Below are positions 23,363 to 57,613 of a DNA stretch of 63,575 nt, piece after piece. A program made the position numbers and the translations under genes. How positions within the stretch are numbered: the first letter of the stretch is position 1; each line of letters opens with the position of its first letter. This DNA is from Thecamonas trahens ATCC 50062 (taxonomy: Eukaryota > Protista > Apusomonadida), in contig NW_013657676.1 of NCBI RefSeq assembly GCF_000142905.1, positions 124,426 to 188,000 on the forward strand, given 5' to 3'. The notes under the pieces were generated by a model, which did not search any database, was not told the origin of the DNA, and worked only from the letters and a program-made list of their open reading frames with translations.

Positions 23363-24594
23363 TTAGTCAAAGGGTGAGTCTGACACGGTGGTACCGTAGC
23401 CGCCGGCGCGCGGCTTGGATGCTGGTGGACGCGAGGCGGCAAACGGGTTGTCGTCGGGCACCGACGAGTAGCCGGGATCTGCTGCAGAGCTGTTGATGCC
23501 TGCGGGCGGGGCCATCGAGTCTGAGGTGTGCGGGACGTAGCCGCCGCTGCCGCTGCGGTGCGAGCCGCGGGCGAGCATGCCCCAATGGAGGGCGATGAGG
23601 ACCGAGGAGAAGAGCTGGAAGAACGAGCCCATGATCGAGGTGACGTAGTACACTCCCTTTGAGCCCATGGAGCACCGCTCATTGCCGGCGACCAGGGTGG
23701 CAAAGACGACCCAGGCGAGAAAGGAGAAGACCCAAGCACCGACCGAGAACAGAAGCGCATACTTGGAGACCTTCTTGGAGCTCTGATAGCAGCCTGCAAT
23801 GGCCGATGCCGCCAGCAGCGACAAGCCCGCAAACAGCATCGAGATGACATACAGGATCATCGCAAACATGCCCGAGACATTCAGCCGGCTGAGACAGGGG
23901 AACGACTCGAACGAGGTCTTGTGCAGGTTGGCATTCGAGTCACTGATATGGAGAGCAAGTGAGTGGGGGGGGGGGTTGAGGGGGGTTGAGGGGGAGGGCG
24001 GGGAGGGCGGGGGGGGGCTGGCGTACCATGCGCCGCGGTAGCACGACTTGGCCAGACCGGCGTGGAGGAACTGGCCGTCGGGGAAGGAGAACTTGAGCCA
24101 GTCGGAGCCCATGAGGCCAAGTACTGCAGTGGGGGGGGGGGGGGTNNNNNNNNNNNNNNNNNNNNNNNNNNNNNNNNNNNNNNNNNNNNNNNNNNNNNNN
24201 NNNNNNNNNNNNNNNNNNNNNNNNNNNNNNNNNNNNNNNNNNNNNNNNNNNNNNNNNNNNNNNNNNNNNNNNNNNNNNNNNNNNNNNNNNNNNNNNNNNN
24301 NNNNNNNNNNNNNNNNNNNNNNNNNNNNNNNNNNNNNNNNNNNNNNNNNNNNNNNNNNNNNNNNNNNNNNNNNNNNNNNNNNNNNNNNNNNNNNNNNNNN
24401 NNNNNNNNNNNNNNNNNNNNNNNNNNNNNNNNNNNNNNNNNNNNNNNNNNNNNNNNNNNNNNNNNNNNNNNNNNNNNNNNNNNNNNNNNNNNNNAGCAGA
24501 AAGGGGGCGTACGAATGAAGAAGAAGCCAACGATACCGGTGAGGATGCCAATGAACAGGTTCCGGACCGGAGGGTCGGGCTCGTTGGCCATCAT
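23363..24594 (-). CDS. Claudin/PMP22-like four-TM membrane protein (intron 23943-24026; another intron spans the gap)
   Basis: TM1 followed by W..GLAKSC...C..C in the first loop, three more hydrophobic segments and a Pro/Tyr-rich tail. Confidence 0.6.
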
Positions 24595-27893: not shown

Positions 27894-28481
27894 ATGCTGC
27901 GCATCGCTGGACAGCGCGTGGCTGGCCAAGCGACCACGGCGGCTTCTGCTTGGGTGGCTCGTACATGTAGGGCGAGTGGAGGCAGTGGAGGCGTACGGGC
28001 GAGCTCGAGCTCGAGCGAGAGTGAGAGCGGGCGCGATGTCAAACCCAAGACGGTGCTGGTGACCACTCGCGAGGGCATCAAGGGCCGGGTCATCGAGGAG
28101 GAACTGGGCATTGTGTGCGCAACCGCGACCAAGACCCGCTCGTTTGTGGTCGATCTGGCTGCCAAGTTCCGCGGCCTCTTTGGTGGTGAGATCAAGGGCT
28201 ACTCGTGGCTGATCAACGACGCCACCCAGGAGGCCATGCTCCGCCTCCGCATTGCTGCCGTCGACATGTCCGCCACTTCGGTTCGCAATGTTCGCATTGA
28301 GGTGGCCACCACCGCTGATCGGCCCTTTGGCCTCTACGCCTCGGTCTCGGTCTACGGCACTGCCGTCCGATGCGAGTCGGCCGACCGATCGCCTACCTCG
28401 CGGATCCTCGCCCAGGGCGAGCGCAACATCGTCCACCTTGACAAGGGTAGCGAGCCCGACTTTGCCGTCTCTTCATCCTGA
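27894..28481 (+). CDS. YbjQ/UPF0145 family protein with probable mitochondrial presequence
   Basis: LVTTREGIKGRVIEEELGIV..RGLFGGEIKGY..EAMLRL..YGTAV; Arg/Ala/Ser-rich N-terminus. Confidence 0.85.
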   Translation: MLRIAGQRVAGQATTAASAWVARTCRASGGSGGVRASSSSSESESGRDVKPKTVLVTTREGIKGRVIEEELGIVCATATKTRSFVVDLAAKFRGLFGGEIKGYSWLINDATQEAMLRLRIAAVDMSATSVRNVRIEVATTADRPFGLYASVSVYGTAVRCESADRSPTSRILAQGERNIVHLDKGSEPDFAVSSS

Positions 28482-28734
28482 TCATACTGCCGTGCTCGTA
28501 CGGGTCGGTGGCCAATAGCCTCCCGCCGCACACCCTCGGACCCTCGCACCCCCCGCACCACCCCACCAGACCACATCCACACCCACAACCCCTTCAACAC
28601 GCCACTTCTCTCAATACATCCTCCCCCACCCCACCCCACCCCACCCACACAACCCTCGCACCCCCCCCCCCCCCACTCCCTCCCCCCCCCTCTTTCACAT
28701 CCCTCGTGACTTGTGATACTCTAGTCCTTCACGA

Positions 28735-29119
28735 ATGGTACGCCCCAATTTGACGACTTTTCCCTGCGATCAGGCCAACCTCCCCAGCCCCTGATCACAC
28801 GCACCCTCACCTACGCCCCCCCTCCCACCTCCTCCACACCCAGGTCTGAGTCTCGTGCTACATGGCGGCCTTTGCCGTCGTAGCCCAGATTGTGCATGCT
28901 GTCTTCCGCTGGATCACCGGCCAGACAAAACCCTCCAAGGACACATCGTCGCTGCAGGACGTCACCATGTCGTGTCCCTTTGGTGGCACGGCCTCGTTAT
29001 CGCCGCCGAGCTCCCCAAAGTCAGCGTCCTTCCCCTCTGCCCCGCCGTCTGCGGCTGCATCGTGTCCGGTCTCAGGCGCTACTGTCCCAGCCACCGTTGC
29101 TCCGGTTGCCCCGTCATAG
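28735..29119 (+). CDS. Candidate selenoprotein, C18orf32/UPF0729-like (MVUVSCY..., 92 aa; intron 28738-28843; UGA at 28847-28849)
   Basis: ATG|GTACGC...CCCAG|GTC TGA GTC TCG TGC TAC ATG is in frame with the 28862-29119 ORF; UxxC, hydrophobic helix, CPF motif; SECIS-like element downstream. Confidence 0.72.
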
Positions 29120-29176
29120 CATCGGGCCACGCCTCGTCGCGCTCCTTATCAACTGGCTCTCGCTCAAACCCCAAGT

Positions 29177-29268
29177 GTGTTATCCATGACGCGGTCCGCG
29201 CTCAAGTCTGCCCCTCTGATCCAAGGGTGGGACGCGTGCTCCGCCGAGCCCCTCTCTGCTGCTGACAC
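29177..29268 (+). promoter_or_regulatory. SECIS element (type II-like)
   Basis: ATGAC 29186-90 / CGAG 29245-48 core; GCGG..CGCG pairs with CGCG..CCGC; AA at 29204-05 after a 13-nt arm; apical mini-helix; lower helix GTGTTA/TGACAC. Confidence 0.68.
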
Positions 29269-29386: not shown

Positions 29387-29806
29387 TCACCCGCCGCCGG
29401 CTCCGCGCTTGGCCGCCAGCTGGGCCTCTAACTGCGCAAACGCGCTCATGGACGCCACTTGCTGCGCATCCACTGCGTCTGCCTCGGCACCTGTGGAACG
29501 GTCGCTGCCGTCGAGCGCGTCACTCGCCTTGGCCGCCGCCGCGCTCTCGGCCCGCGCCGCCATCTCCACCTGGTACTCGTTGAGCTCCTTAAAGTACTCG
29601 ATCCACACACAGTCGACGCATCCCGAGCCGCAGCAGTTGAGCGGCTCGCTCGGCGGGAGGAGGACATCGACATCATGCCCGCCGTCGCCGCCGTCACCAC
29701 CGTCGCCACCGCCGGCAACGCCGCTCCCCGACACCGCCCGCATCGCCGACCACTTCACGCCGCGTGCTGCCTGGACGAGCCTCCGCCCCACGCCGACTCG
29801 CAGCAT
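29387..29806 (-). CDS. OXLD1: Oxidoreductase-like domain protein (OXLD1-like), probably mitochondrial
   Basis: PPSEPLNCCGSGCVDCVWIEY motif; C-terminal SAFAQLEAQL; Arg-rich presequence. Confidence 0.82.
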   Translation of the reverse strand: MLRVGVGRRLVQAARGVKWSAMRAVSGSGVAGGGDGGDGGDGGHDVDVLLPPSEPLNCCGSGCVDCVWIEYFKELNEYQVEMAARAESAAAAKASDALDGSDRSTGAEADAVDAQQVASMSAFAQLEAQLAAKRGAGGG

Positions 29807-29873
29807 CGTGACCCAAGCCGCAACCGGTCTCCGCCCGTAACGAGCTGTGAGAGAAGTGGCCGTGGGCGGCGGT

Positions 29874-31676
29874 ATGCGATCGCCTACGCCCTGGCTCCGC
29901 CTCGGACCCTCGGCCGCTGCCGCCCTCCGCACCGCGCCGCAAGCCGCGCCGGCCCCTCACGCCGACGCCCACTTTGTGGTCACAGCACCCACACCTGTCG
30001 AGGCCCCGCGCCTTGCCGCACTCTCGCTTCCGGCCTGGCGCGCTGCGGGCGTCGAGCTGCCCGACGATCCGGCGTCGTCACCCGACGTCGTCGACGTTCT
30101 CGCCGGCAACTCACTCCCGCCTGGCGCCAGCCCGGTCGCTCACGTCTATGCCGGCCATCAGTTTGGATCATTCTCTGGCCAACTTGGCGATGGCGCTGCC
30201 ATGCTCCTCGGCACCATTGCCGGTGACGAGAGGCCCCCGATGGAACTGCAGCTCAAGGGCGCCGGCCTCACCCCGTGCTCACGGTCGGGAGACGGGCGCA
30301 AGGTTCTGCGGTCGTCGCTCCGCGAGATGGTCGCGTCCGAGGCCATGGCCGCCCTTTGCGTGCCCACCACTCGTTCGGGCTCGCTTGTTATCTCTGACAC
30401 GACTGTAGTCCGCGACATCAACTACGACGGACGCCCCGCAGCCGAGCCAGCCGCGGTCATCACCCGACTGGCGCCGTCGTTCTTCCGCTTTGGCTCGTTT
30501 GAGCTCTGCCTCCCGCCTGATCCGCGCACCCTCCGCAGTGGGCCATCGCATCGCTCGCCGCACATTCTCACCGAGCTCTTCGACTATGTGGTCGAAACCC
30601 ACTTTGCCGAGTTGGCGGTGCATGAGACCTCCCGCGCCGCCCGAGTCGCCGCCTGGCTCGACCACGTCGCCGCATCAACCGGTGCGCTCGTCGCCCACTG
30701 GCAGGCACTCGGCTTTTGCCACGGCGTCCTCAACACTGACAACATGTCCATCCACGGCATTACCCTCGACTATGGCCCGTTTGCCTTTATGGGCGCCTAC
30801 GATCCCGAGTATGCCTGCAACGCGTCGGATCCCACCGGGCGCTACTCCTACGCCGCCCAGCCTGAGGTCTGCGCCTGGAACTGCATCCGCCTCGCCAACG
30901 CCCTCGATCCGCTGCTCCCCGCCGACAACGGCGAGGATATTGTAAGCAATGCTTTCGAGTCCGCGTACAGCGAGACGCTCGCCTCGCTTGCCCGCCGCAA
31001 ACTCGGCCTCGCGCCGACCGCGCCGCAGCAGGTCGCCCTGGATGCCTTTGAGTCCCTTCGCGCCACCATGGCAGCCACCGCCGCCGACTACACTGCCACT
31101 TTCCGCGCACTTGGTGCCACGTACCGTGCTCCCAACGAGCTAGCGGCGCACCTGGCGGAAACAACCTGTGCCTCCCGCGAGTTTCTTCTCGACCGCGACG
31201 CGCCGACCGTGCCGTCGCACCAGCTCGATGCCCTCCTCGCCTTGCCCAACGTCCAGCTTCCGCCGGGGCTGCTCAACGCCGAGCTCCGCAAGCGTGAGCG
31301 GCGCAAACTCTACGCCGAAGCCTACGCCACTGACGACGACAAAGCCAAGAACGATGAAAGGGTCTGGTACGACTTCCTTACCAACACGCTCGCGCCGCTG
31401 GTGGCGGAGCACGGGCTGGGCGATCCGGCCGCCCGAATGCTCGCCATGAACGCTGCCAATCCGTGGATTGTCCCGCACAACTGGATGCTTGAGGCCGCCA
31501 TCCGTGCTCTCGAGGATAACTCGGACACAGCCCCGCTCGAAGCACTCCTCGGCCTCGACTACTTTGTCGAGAGCGACGAGCACCGCCAAGCGTGCGTCGC
31601 TAGCCTCGGCCTCGCCGACTCGGGCCGGCTGCGCCACCTCGACACAGTCCCGCCGCGGCTCTCATGATCCTCGTAG
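29874..31676 (+). CDS. SELENOO: Selenoprotein O (protein AMPylase) with Sec at UGA 31665-31667 (..RLSUSS*)
   Basis: YAGHQFG..GQLGDGAA, ELQLKGAG.TP.SR.GDGRKVLRSS.RE, GFCHGVLNTDNMSI; TGA TCC TCG TAG gives the conserved U-S-S-stop end. Confidence 0.93.
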
Positions 31677-31737: not shown

Positions 31738-31831
31738 TGCCTGCTGCCCTGACGGCACGAGGGCCCAACCATGCCGGCGCTGCCGGCGTGGCGCCTTTGC
31801 GCTCGAGCAACTCGACTTACTTTTGCAGGCA
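31738..31831 (+). promoter_or_regulatory. SECIS element of SelO (type II, CUGA core)
   Basis: CTGAC 31749-53 / CGAG 31804-07; GGCACGAGGGC pairs with GCCTTTGCGCT; AA 31767-68; mini-helix CCATGCCGGC/GCCGGCGTGG; lower helix TGCCTGC/GCAGGCA. Confidence 0.85.
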
Positions 31832-55871: not shown

Positions 55872-57613
55872 ATGGTTCGTTCGTTGCCGGGCAGCGGCAC
55901 CCCCCGCGCGCGCTGCCGCCCCCCCACCTCCCCTCCCCCCCGGGAACTACCCCCTTCCCCCTTCGTCCTCCCGCCCCCTTGCCCCCCCCTTCCCCCTACC
56001 CCTACCTCCCCAGCTCCCCCCCCTTCTCCCCTCACCCCCCCCCCCCTCCCCTGCAGGCTGCACACGGTCACGGTCAGGGCGAGGAGGTGACCATGATCGC
56101 CTCGTCAGACGTTCGGGTGCGACTGTACCACGCGTTGCTGGACGCCGACCCGAGGCGCGAGGGCGTGGTGCCTGTGGAGGCGTTCAATGCCGCGCTGGAG
56201 GCTGTCGGCCTGCGGTATGGGACGGAAGAGTGCGACCGGCTGATGACGCAGGTCAAGCTGGTGTCGGACGAGCGCGGGCAGTTTGTCGACTGCTACCGTT
56301 ACCTGGAGGAGATCGAGGGCATTCTGTCGACGCCTGCGGCGGTGCACCACTCGCTGCGCGGGGCGCGTGTGACGGACAACTTCTCGGTGGTGCAGGAAGA
56401 GTACAAGGAGCGGGCCATCCAGCACCGCGACTACATCATGGGCCAGAAGGACCGCATCTACCGGGCGTTCTGCCAGTTTGAGGCCGGCCTCTGCTCCGAG
56501 GCCGAGTTTCTGGACTTTCTTTACGGGTGCGGCGTCGACGACACCCGCGAGCTGCGCAAGATCCTCAAGGTCAAGCGTACCGAGGGCTACATCCACTTTT
56601 CCGAGCTGATGAAGGTCTGCACCCTGCCGGGGCGGCACCTGACCCAGACCCAGGCCGAGCTCCCGCAGCCGGAGCCGATTGTGTGGGAGACGCAGAAGCG
56701 TTCGACCGACGTTATTTCGTGGCGTGGCGCGGCAAACGAGTTGCGGACCGGCAAGCGGCTTGGCGCCAACACGGTCGGCTACGTGCCAGACGTGCCGAAT
56801 CCCGAGGCCCTCGCCGCCCGCCCCTCGCGCGCCATCGACACCGCCGAGTTGACCGCCTTTGAGCGGGTCTCGCAGGAGCGCCTTTACGCCTGCGTCCGTG
56901 ACTTTATCCAGGGCGACATCGAGGCGCCGGCATTCCGTGCCTTTCTCCACGACATGCGCATTCCCATCAACCGCGACATGGAGATCCTCATCGACCGCCA
57001 ATCGACCTCGCAGGGCTCGGTCGCCTTTGGCGAGCTGCTCAAGACCATGAACATGGATCAGATCTACGGGTTCAAGGCCGTGCCAGCTGTCAACACTTCG
57101 TCGGGCGCCGAGCGTGTCCATGGCGACATCATCGGGTGGACAAAGGTCAAGCACGAGGAGGACTTTGCCGTCAAGACCACTCCGGCCAAGCGGTACGTCG
57201 ACCGCCCCAACTCGGGTAACTTTCTGGTGTGGAACGTCCACAACCCGGGCGCAGCTCCACCGCCGGCTGCTCCCGAGTCGGCCTCGGGCGTGGCACGCCA
57301 CGGCCCCTCCGGCGACCACGACAAGATTCTCGAGTGGTCTTCGTGGCGCGACGGTATTCCGCCGGACCAGCCCGTCAACACCCACCGCTCCGGTGCCACC
57401 TCGCGACTCGCCTACGACTCGGGCGACATCTTCACCTGGTCCTCGCGCCAGACAGAAAACGAGGCCGACTACTGGGTCCAGCGTCGCGGCAAGGCGTCGC
57501 CCACACGCAGGCCCGACACCGCCAACCCGCTCGGCTTTGAGACCCACTCGGACAAGCCGCAGCCGCCGCCGTCTGACTGGCGGCAGCAGCTCCTCTCCAC
57601 CCGCCCGTGGTAA
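55872..57613 (+). CDS. EF-hand-like protein with repeated GDI.xW motifs (ATG followed directly by intron 55875-56056)
   Basis: ATG|GTTCGT...CTGCAG|GCT in frame; degenerate EF-hand pairs (GQFVDC, GYIHFSEL, GSVAFGEL); Trp-containing repeats. Confidence 0.65.

Follow-up and report, generated by a model that had tools for sequence, protein, structure and literature searches.

A candidate selenoprotein microgene with a proposed selenocysteine at its third codon and its own SECIS element in the Thecamonas genome

Proteins of the UPF0729 family presumably begin with M-V-C-x-x-C, a start that would put the selenocysteine (Sec, U) of the candidate described here on the first Cys. The human protein C18orf32, of 76 residues, forms a helix near its N-terminus (residues 4-35), is disordered towards the C-terminus, and is found at the ER and on lipid droplets (PMC12797721). 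It is also known as an ER protein from the same GPI-processing screen that yielded selenoprotein T (SELENOT) (PMC5800811). The candidate is similar in size and layout, with 92 residues, a hydrophobic segment at residues 4-22 and a tail of Ser, Ala and Pro, but many unrelated proteins are built in this way. The aromatic cluster of C18orf32 (Y16/F19/Y23/Y25) has no clear counterpart in the candidate. The likeness comes down to three residues and the architecture.

The candidate lies in a stretch of 63,575 nt, hereafter the window (C4:124426-188000), from the 28.7 Mb assembly (65% GC) of a marine flagellate. In the open literature searched, we found no paper on selenoproteins or SECIS elements in Thecamonas or in apusomonads generally. 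A preliminary description of the locus had assigned the product to C18orf32/UPF0729, with the UGA on a conserved Cys. Two protein queries were used, residues 4-92 (window 28850-29116, leaving off M-V-U) and the 85-residue product of the main open reading frame (ORF). With residues 4-92, hmmscan returned no family at E<=10, PF14975 (DUF4512) included, and a six-frame search of the whole genome gave no match to DUF4512. Among 1.84 billion representative sequences, phmmer found low-complexity matches to long proteins only. No homologue was found by word-indexed search, by a scan of metagenome contigs, by exact-sequence look-up or in the ESM Atlas, and no UPF0729 member turned up in any of the protein searches. 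Two weak matches in the organism's own genome (L002 and L003) were rejected as paralogues, being of low complexity. Since no homologue was found, no Cys or Sec could be aligned to the UGA, which does not in itself contradict a Sec codon. It is unlikely that the microgene is a Sec form of UPF0729/C18orf32 in which U replaces the first Cys of CxxC, and we treat the link, which draws in part on general knowledge of the family, as a lead rather than a finding. If it were true, the unexplained CxxC in human C18orf32, a poorly understood protein of the ER and lipid droplets, would be a redox centre.

What the locus does contain is a SECIS element, a UGA in frame with the main ORF, and splice signals like those of other introns in the genome, which also encodes Sec machinery. 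Judged from these features of the sequence, it is probably a two-exon, unannotated gene encoding a new orphan selenoprotein, here called the microgene (28735-29257, + strand). The start codon, intron boundaries, TGA, ORF and hairpin given in the preliminary description were all found where it had placed them, and they are listed with the neighbouring genes in Table 1.

Table 1. Coordinates of the predicted microgene and its neighbours, numbered from the first letter of the window
Feature	Position	Strand	Remarks
YbjQ-like gene	27894-28481	+	5' neighbour of the microgene
Proposed start codon ATG	28735-28737	+	sole coding triplet of exon 1; GTACGCC directly 3'
Proposed intron	28738-28843	+	106 nt, phase 0; GTACGCC...C-rich...CACCCAG; GT at 28738, AG at 28842-28843
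Exon 2, coding part	28844-29119	+	V-U-V-S-C-Y, 85-codon ORF, TAG
In-frame TGA, proposed Sec codon 3	28847-28849	+	U of U-V-S-C
85-codon ORF	28862-29119	+	own ATG at 28862; stop TAG 29117-29119
Type-2 SECIS (candidate)	29179-29257	+	AUGA 29186-29189; UCAA bulge, AA 29204-29205; mini-stem; 3' GA 29246-29247
OXLD1-like gene	29387-29932	-	convergent; 3' neighbour of the microgene
SelO	29847-31676	+	next + strand gene; ends ...L-S-TGA-S-S-TAG (L-S-U-S-S-stop)
SelO SECIS	31739-31816	+	CUGA core instead of AUGA; 73 nt past stop

Exon 2 would open with GTC TGA GTC TCG TGC TAC ATG, in frame with the 85-codon ORF. The TGA in this series is the nearest in-frame stop upstream of the ORF, five codons 5' of its ATG and 337 nt 5' of the SECIS core. 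Only two ATGs, those at 28735 and 28862, occur between 28482 and 28870. The conceptual spliced product reads M-V-U-V-S-C-Y-M-A-A-F... over a total of 92 residues, and with the UGA in frame it carries a UxxC motif (U3, C6). Residues 4-22 form its most hydrophobic 19-residue window (mean Kyte-Doolittle value 1.88), and Ser, Ala and Pro abound in its C-terminal half.

The hairpin downstream of the ORF is almost certainly a genuine SECIS element, as judged from its build and its scores. Following the AUGA are a C and 13 further nt, then the AA, a two-part mini-stem and a 3' strand of CCGC-C-GA-G (29241-29248). Helix II is GCGG/UC/CGCGC, and helix I is weak. The AUGA starts 67 nt past the TAG that closes the 85-codon ORF; in SelO this spacing is 73 nt. 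Two covariance models were used for scoring, neither of them trained on the candidate: R2, built from seven SECIS elements of other loci with both the candidate and SelO left out, and R3, built from all 16 validated elements, the candidate not being among them. Alignments were fitted to the models, the MAFFT alignment being unusable, and a single-sequence model (R1) was set aside as too specific. In a scan of the window with filters off, R2 gave the candidate 36.8 bits (E 2.1e-5) against 16.9 for the next match, and the held-out SelO element 53.9 bits; R3 scored the candidate at 31.8 bits and the runner-up at 16.2. The claim of a SECIS-like hairpin at this place was thus borne out by both models. 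The noise ceiling of R2 was ~17 bits over 130 kb of other loci. Nine true elements held out of R2 scored 16.7-53.9 bits, a range within which the candidate would rank third among the 9.

The genome-wide use of R2 covered 150 prefiltered sites, which did not include the candidate, its score being that of the window scan. Matches of at least 30.5 bits numbered 11, and every one of them (11/11) lay just 3' of a Sec gene; eight of these elements had already been identified and three were new (3' of two deiodinase (DIO)-like genes and one DsbA-like gene). By interpolation from the E-values of this search, 36.8 bits corresponds to a genome-wide E of ~0.01. A simple descriptor, UGAC...CGA(G/A), applied to both strands of 393 kb, found sites only 3' of gene-family matches and at the candidate. 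The gene-family sites comprised nine with an in-frame TGA or a Sec-family gene and one, uncertain, near an MsrB-like match. In build, the candidate is identical to the 16 elements found 3' of Sec genes, and like them it lies on the coding strand. In common with the SelO element, it has a C.C position within the quartet, and UGA and AA are 14 nt apart. The locus is single-copy, so the element does not come from a duplicated 3'UTR.

Two results from general tools were negative. The hairpin as a whole folds no better than shuffled sequences (z 0.39), and Rfam SECIS_1 (RF00031) gave no match to the candidate at E<=10, its gathering threshold not being reached. However, the same Rfam model had no match at the SelO 3'UTR or anywhere else in the genome and missed all 16 validated elements, so that its negative result at the candidate is uninformative.

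The absence of Sec machinery would have counted against the proposal, but the genome has a tRNA-Sec (74 bits, anticodon TCA), SepSecS and SPS2/SelD. At least 15 other Sec genes with an in-frame TGA are present, among them four GPx-type genes, two SelW-like genes, TR and MsrA. The consensus in this lineage runs from (A/C)UGAC through a helix II of ~12 positions and a bulge of four nucleotides (NNAA) to a mini-stem and CGA(G/A), with C before the UGA in 6 of 16 elements. As a by-product of this work, the lineage consensus and model recover the organism's selenoproteome where Rfam finds nothing. For example, a DsbA-like thioredoxin-fold gene with an in-frame TGA in U-P-W-C, upstream of a SECIS of 30.5 bits (L066, C5:169855-169928, - strand), was detected through the SECIS model alone. 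Two deiodinase-like genes with GS-x-S-U-PP as active site have elements of 39.7 bits (L064, C45:115485-115560) and 33.9 bits (L065, C10:44409-44478).

A few further loci were noted in the genome. The second SelW-like gene (L014, C61, - strand; C-T-S-U) has a SECIS candidate at positions 1201-1276 of its locus with UUGAC and CUAC, which scores 21 bits, against the norm of A/C-UGAC and NNAA; it is perhaps an unusual element or one assigned to the wrong gene. The hairpin near the MsrB-like match mentioned above (L019, C72, - strand, locus positions 163-224) reads UUGAC...CGAG and scores 20 bits, and that match sits inside an open frame of 1900 residues that has no in-frame TGA. At one GPx locus (L008, C40), ~240 nt downstream of the GPx SECIS, a poly-C tract gives way to a run of N, which is either masked or a gap in the assembly.

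The proposed intron has the splice signals of its host. Its donor hexamer, GTACGC, is that of the verified introns in a GPx gene (L011) and a SelW-like gene (L015) of the same genome. With slashes marking exon boundaries, the GPx intron reads AAC/GTACGCATCC and the SelW-like intron TAC TG/GTACGCC...CCCCAG/T; removal of the latter restores I-E-Y-C-T-N-U-G-Y. A C-rich body is common to the SelW-like intron and the candidate intron. Donors of the form GTAYGY occur 92 times in 127 kb (the window on both strands), or at ~7e-4 per position, and one of them lies directly 3' of the sole upstream ATG. Three AG dinucleotides precede the TGA, and the one at 28842-28843 alone keeps the frame. Logan contigs from five public runs are of low depth, colinear with the genome and free of joints, and none spans 28700-28862. 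If the intron were retained, the ATG at 28735 would begin an upstream ORF of 19 codons, out of frame with the 85-codon ORF, leaving the SECIS without a UGA. The preliminary description had pointed to a second ATG with an intron directly after it, at 55872; ATG/GTTCGT is indeed present there, but that intron is itself putative and counts as no evidence. A further ATG/GTACGCC at window position 24029 on the - strand may be another codon with an intron directly after it.

Codon usage favors the frame of the 85-codon ORF, with log-odds of +14.4 against -39 and -10 for the other two frames. In a split-sample test the ORF scored 10.4; 15% of true in-frame windows scored lower, and 18% of off-frame windows scored as high or higher. 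The C-terminal half of the ORF has a negative codon score. Codon statistics thus back the ORF weakly and barely discriminate at such a length.

Another possible explanation is that the SECIS is a fossil, or idle, and that the protein is simply the 85-residue product initiated at 28862, with the TGA lying in the 5'UTR or ending a tiny uORF. In the fossil version, an ancestral Sec codon, for example at the Cys of an S-C-P motif, would have changed to a Cys codon. The Ser/Pro/Ala-rich tail does contain two such S-C-P repeats, in both of which the Cys codon is TGT, one base from TGA; the ORF has an ATG of its own, and the intron is a predicted one. However, unused elements should decay, and this one is intact and outscores most of the active ones. 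An idle element would also require three coincidences, namely a GTACGCC directly after the sole upstream ATG, an acceptor that keeps the frame, and TGA from among the stop codons at the position in question. We therefore regard this explanation as unlikely.

It is less probable again that the SECIS is real and serves a different gene model, in which either the TGA of the YbjQ-like gene (28479-28481) or the TGA at 28792 in the unspliced frame is recoded. The YbjQ-like ORF ends in a TGA followed by S-Y-C, which would give U-x-x-C, and the unspliced frame from the ATG at 28735 is open until 29265. However, the extension of the YbjQ-like ORF is low-complexity sequence of the poly-C/CCCA kind with negative codon scores, 707 nt from the SECIS, so that its TGA-S-Y-C is most likely a coincidence. 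The unspliced frame, with a codon score of -10, would pass through the SECIS, which lies at the usual distance past the TAG of the 85-codon ORF. The possibility that the YbjQ-like gene is fused to exon 2 was likewise considered and rejected, there being no good phase-compatible donor; the sole phase-0 GT is the GTCTCT at 28467. Finally, a chance arrangement of a SECIS look-alike and an ORF that is not a gene would agree with the weak coding statistics, the failure of phmmer and the metagenome scan to find homologues and the unremarkable folding energy, but it is very improbable, given a hairpin 15-20 bits above any background match in ~390 kb, a genome-wide expectation of ~0.01 at that score, and a position and strand that fit a 3'UTR between convergent genes.

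For the selenoprotein microgene, the favored reading, a mode of expression can be proposed. Exon 1 would supply the ATG only, and the 106-nt intron would be removed. The SECIS in the 3'UTR would then recruit the Sec-insertion machinery, such that the UGA is read as selenocysteine. The resulting protein would consist of M-V-U-V-S-C-Y, a hydrophobic helix and the Ser/Pro/Ala-rich tail. The N-terminal helix could anchor it, while the U3-x-x-C6 pair might form a selenenylsulfide at the membrane surface; a membrane-anchored redox microprotein is the most likely of the roles that can be predicted. By the usual exon-junction rule, the transcript should escape nonsense-mediated decay, since the UGA is 3' of the sole exon junction. 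The mechanism is ordinary, and it is the placement that is unusual, with Sec as residue 3 and the start codon split by an intron from the rest of the gene. We know of no precedent for Sec as codon 3, and to our knowledge no Sec codon lies nearer to a start codon.

An in-frame AUG is found 13 nt 3' of the UGA, and one may speculate about a selenium switch. With selenium available, the full U-x-x-C protein would be made; in its absence, translation would stop after M-V and re-initiate, giving the 85-residue form, which would have neither U3 nor C6.

If the gene is what it appears to be, it would represent a new selenoprotein family beyond the reach of homology-based tools, and it would offer a test of how soon after elongation begins the SECIS machinery can act. 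It would also mean that gene callers overlook selenoprotein microgenes in which an intron separates the start codon from the remaining coding sequence.

Among known selenoproteins, SelK (PF10961) and SelS are like the candidate in being short membrane proteins with a single helix, a disordered tail, one Sec and a type-2 SECIS, and the SelK gene of the same genome (L021) has a SECIS of the same build. However, neither has sequence similarity to the candidate, and their Sec is near the C-terminus, within the disordered tail, whereas that of the candidate would be residue 3, ahead of the helix and in a UxxC motif. The selenoproteins of the thioredoxin fold, SelW, SelT, SelU and the DsbA-like protein, have a redox motif of the UxxC type and, 3' of their genes, SECIS elements of the lineage consensus. 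Their motif is part of a folded domain, whereas that of the candidate would sit at a free N-terminus beside a hydrophobic helix. As for the SECIS itself, the candidate has the features of Rfam SECIS_1, being a type-2 element built of an NUGA/GA quartet, a helix II that spans ~12 positions, a bulge with AA and a mini-stem at the apex; the difference lies in the lineage consensus, (A/C)UGAC...NNAA...CGAG, in which a C before the UGA is common.
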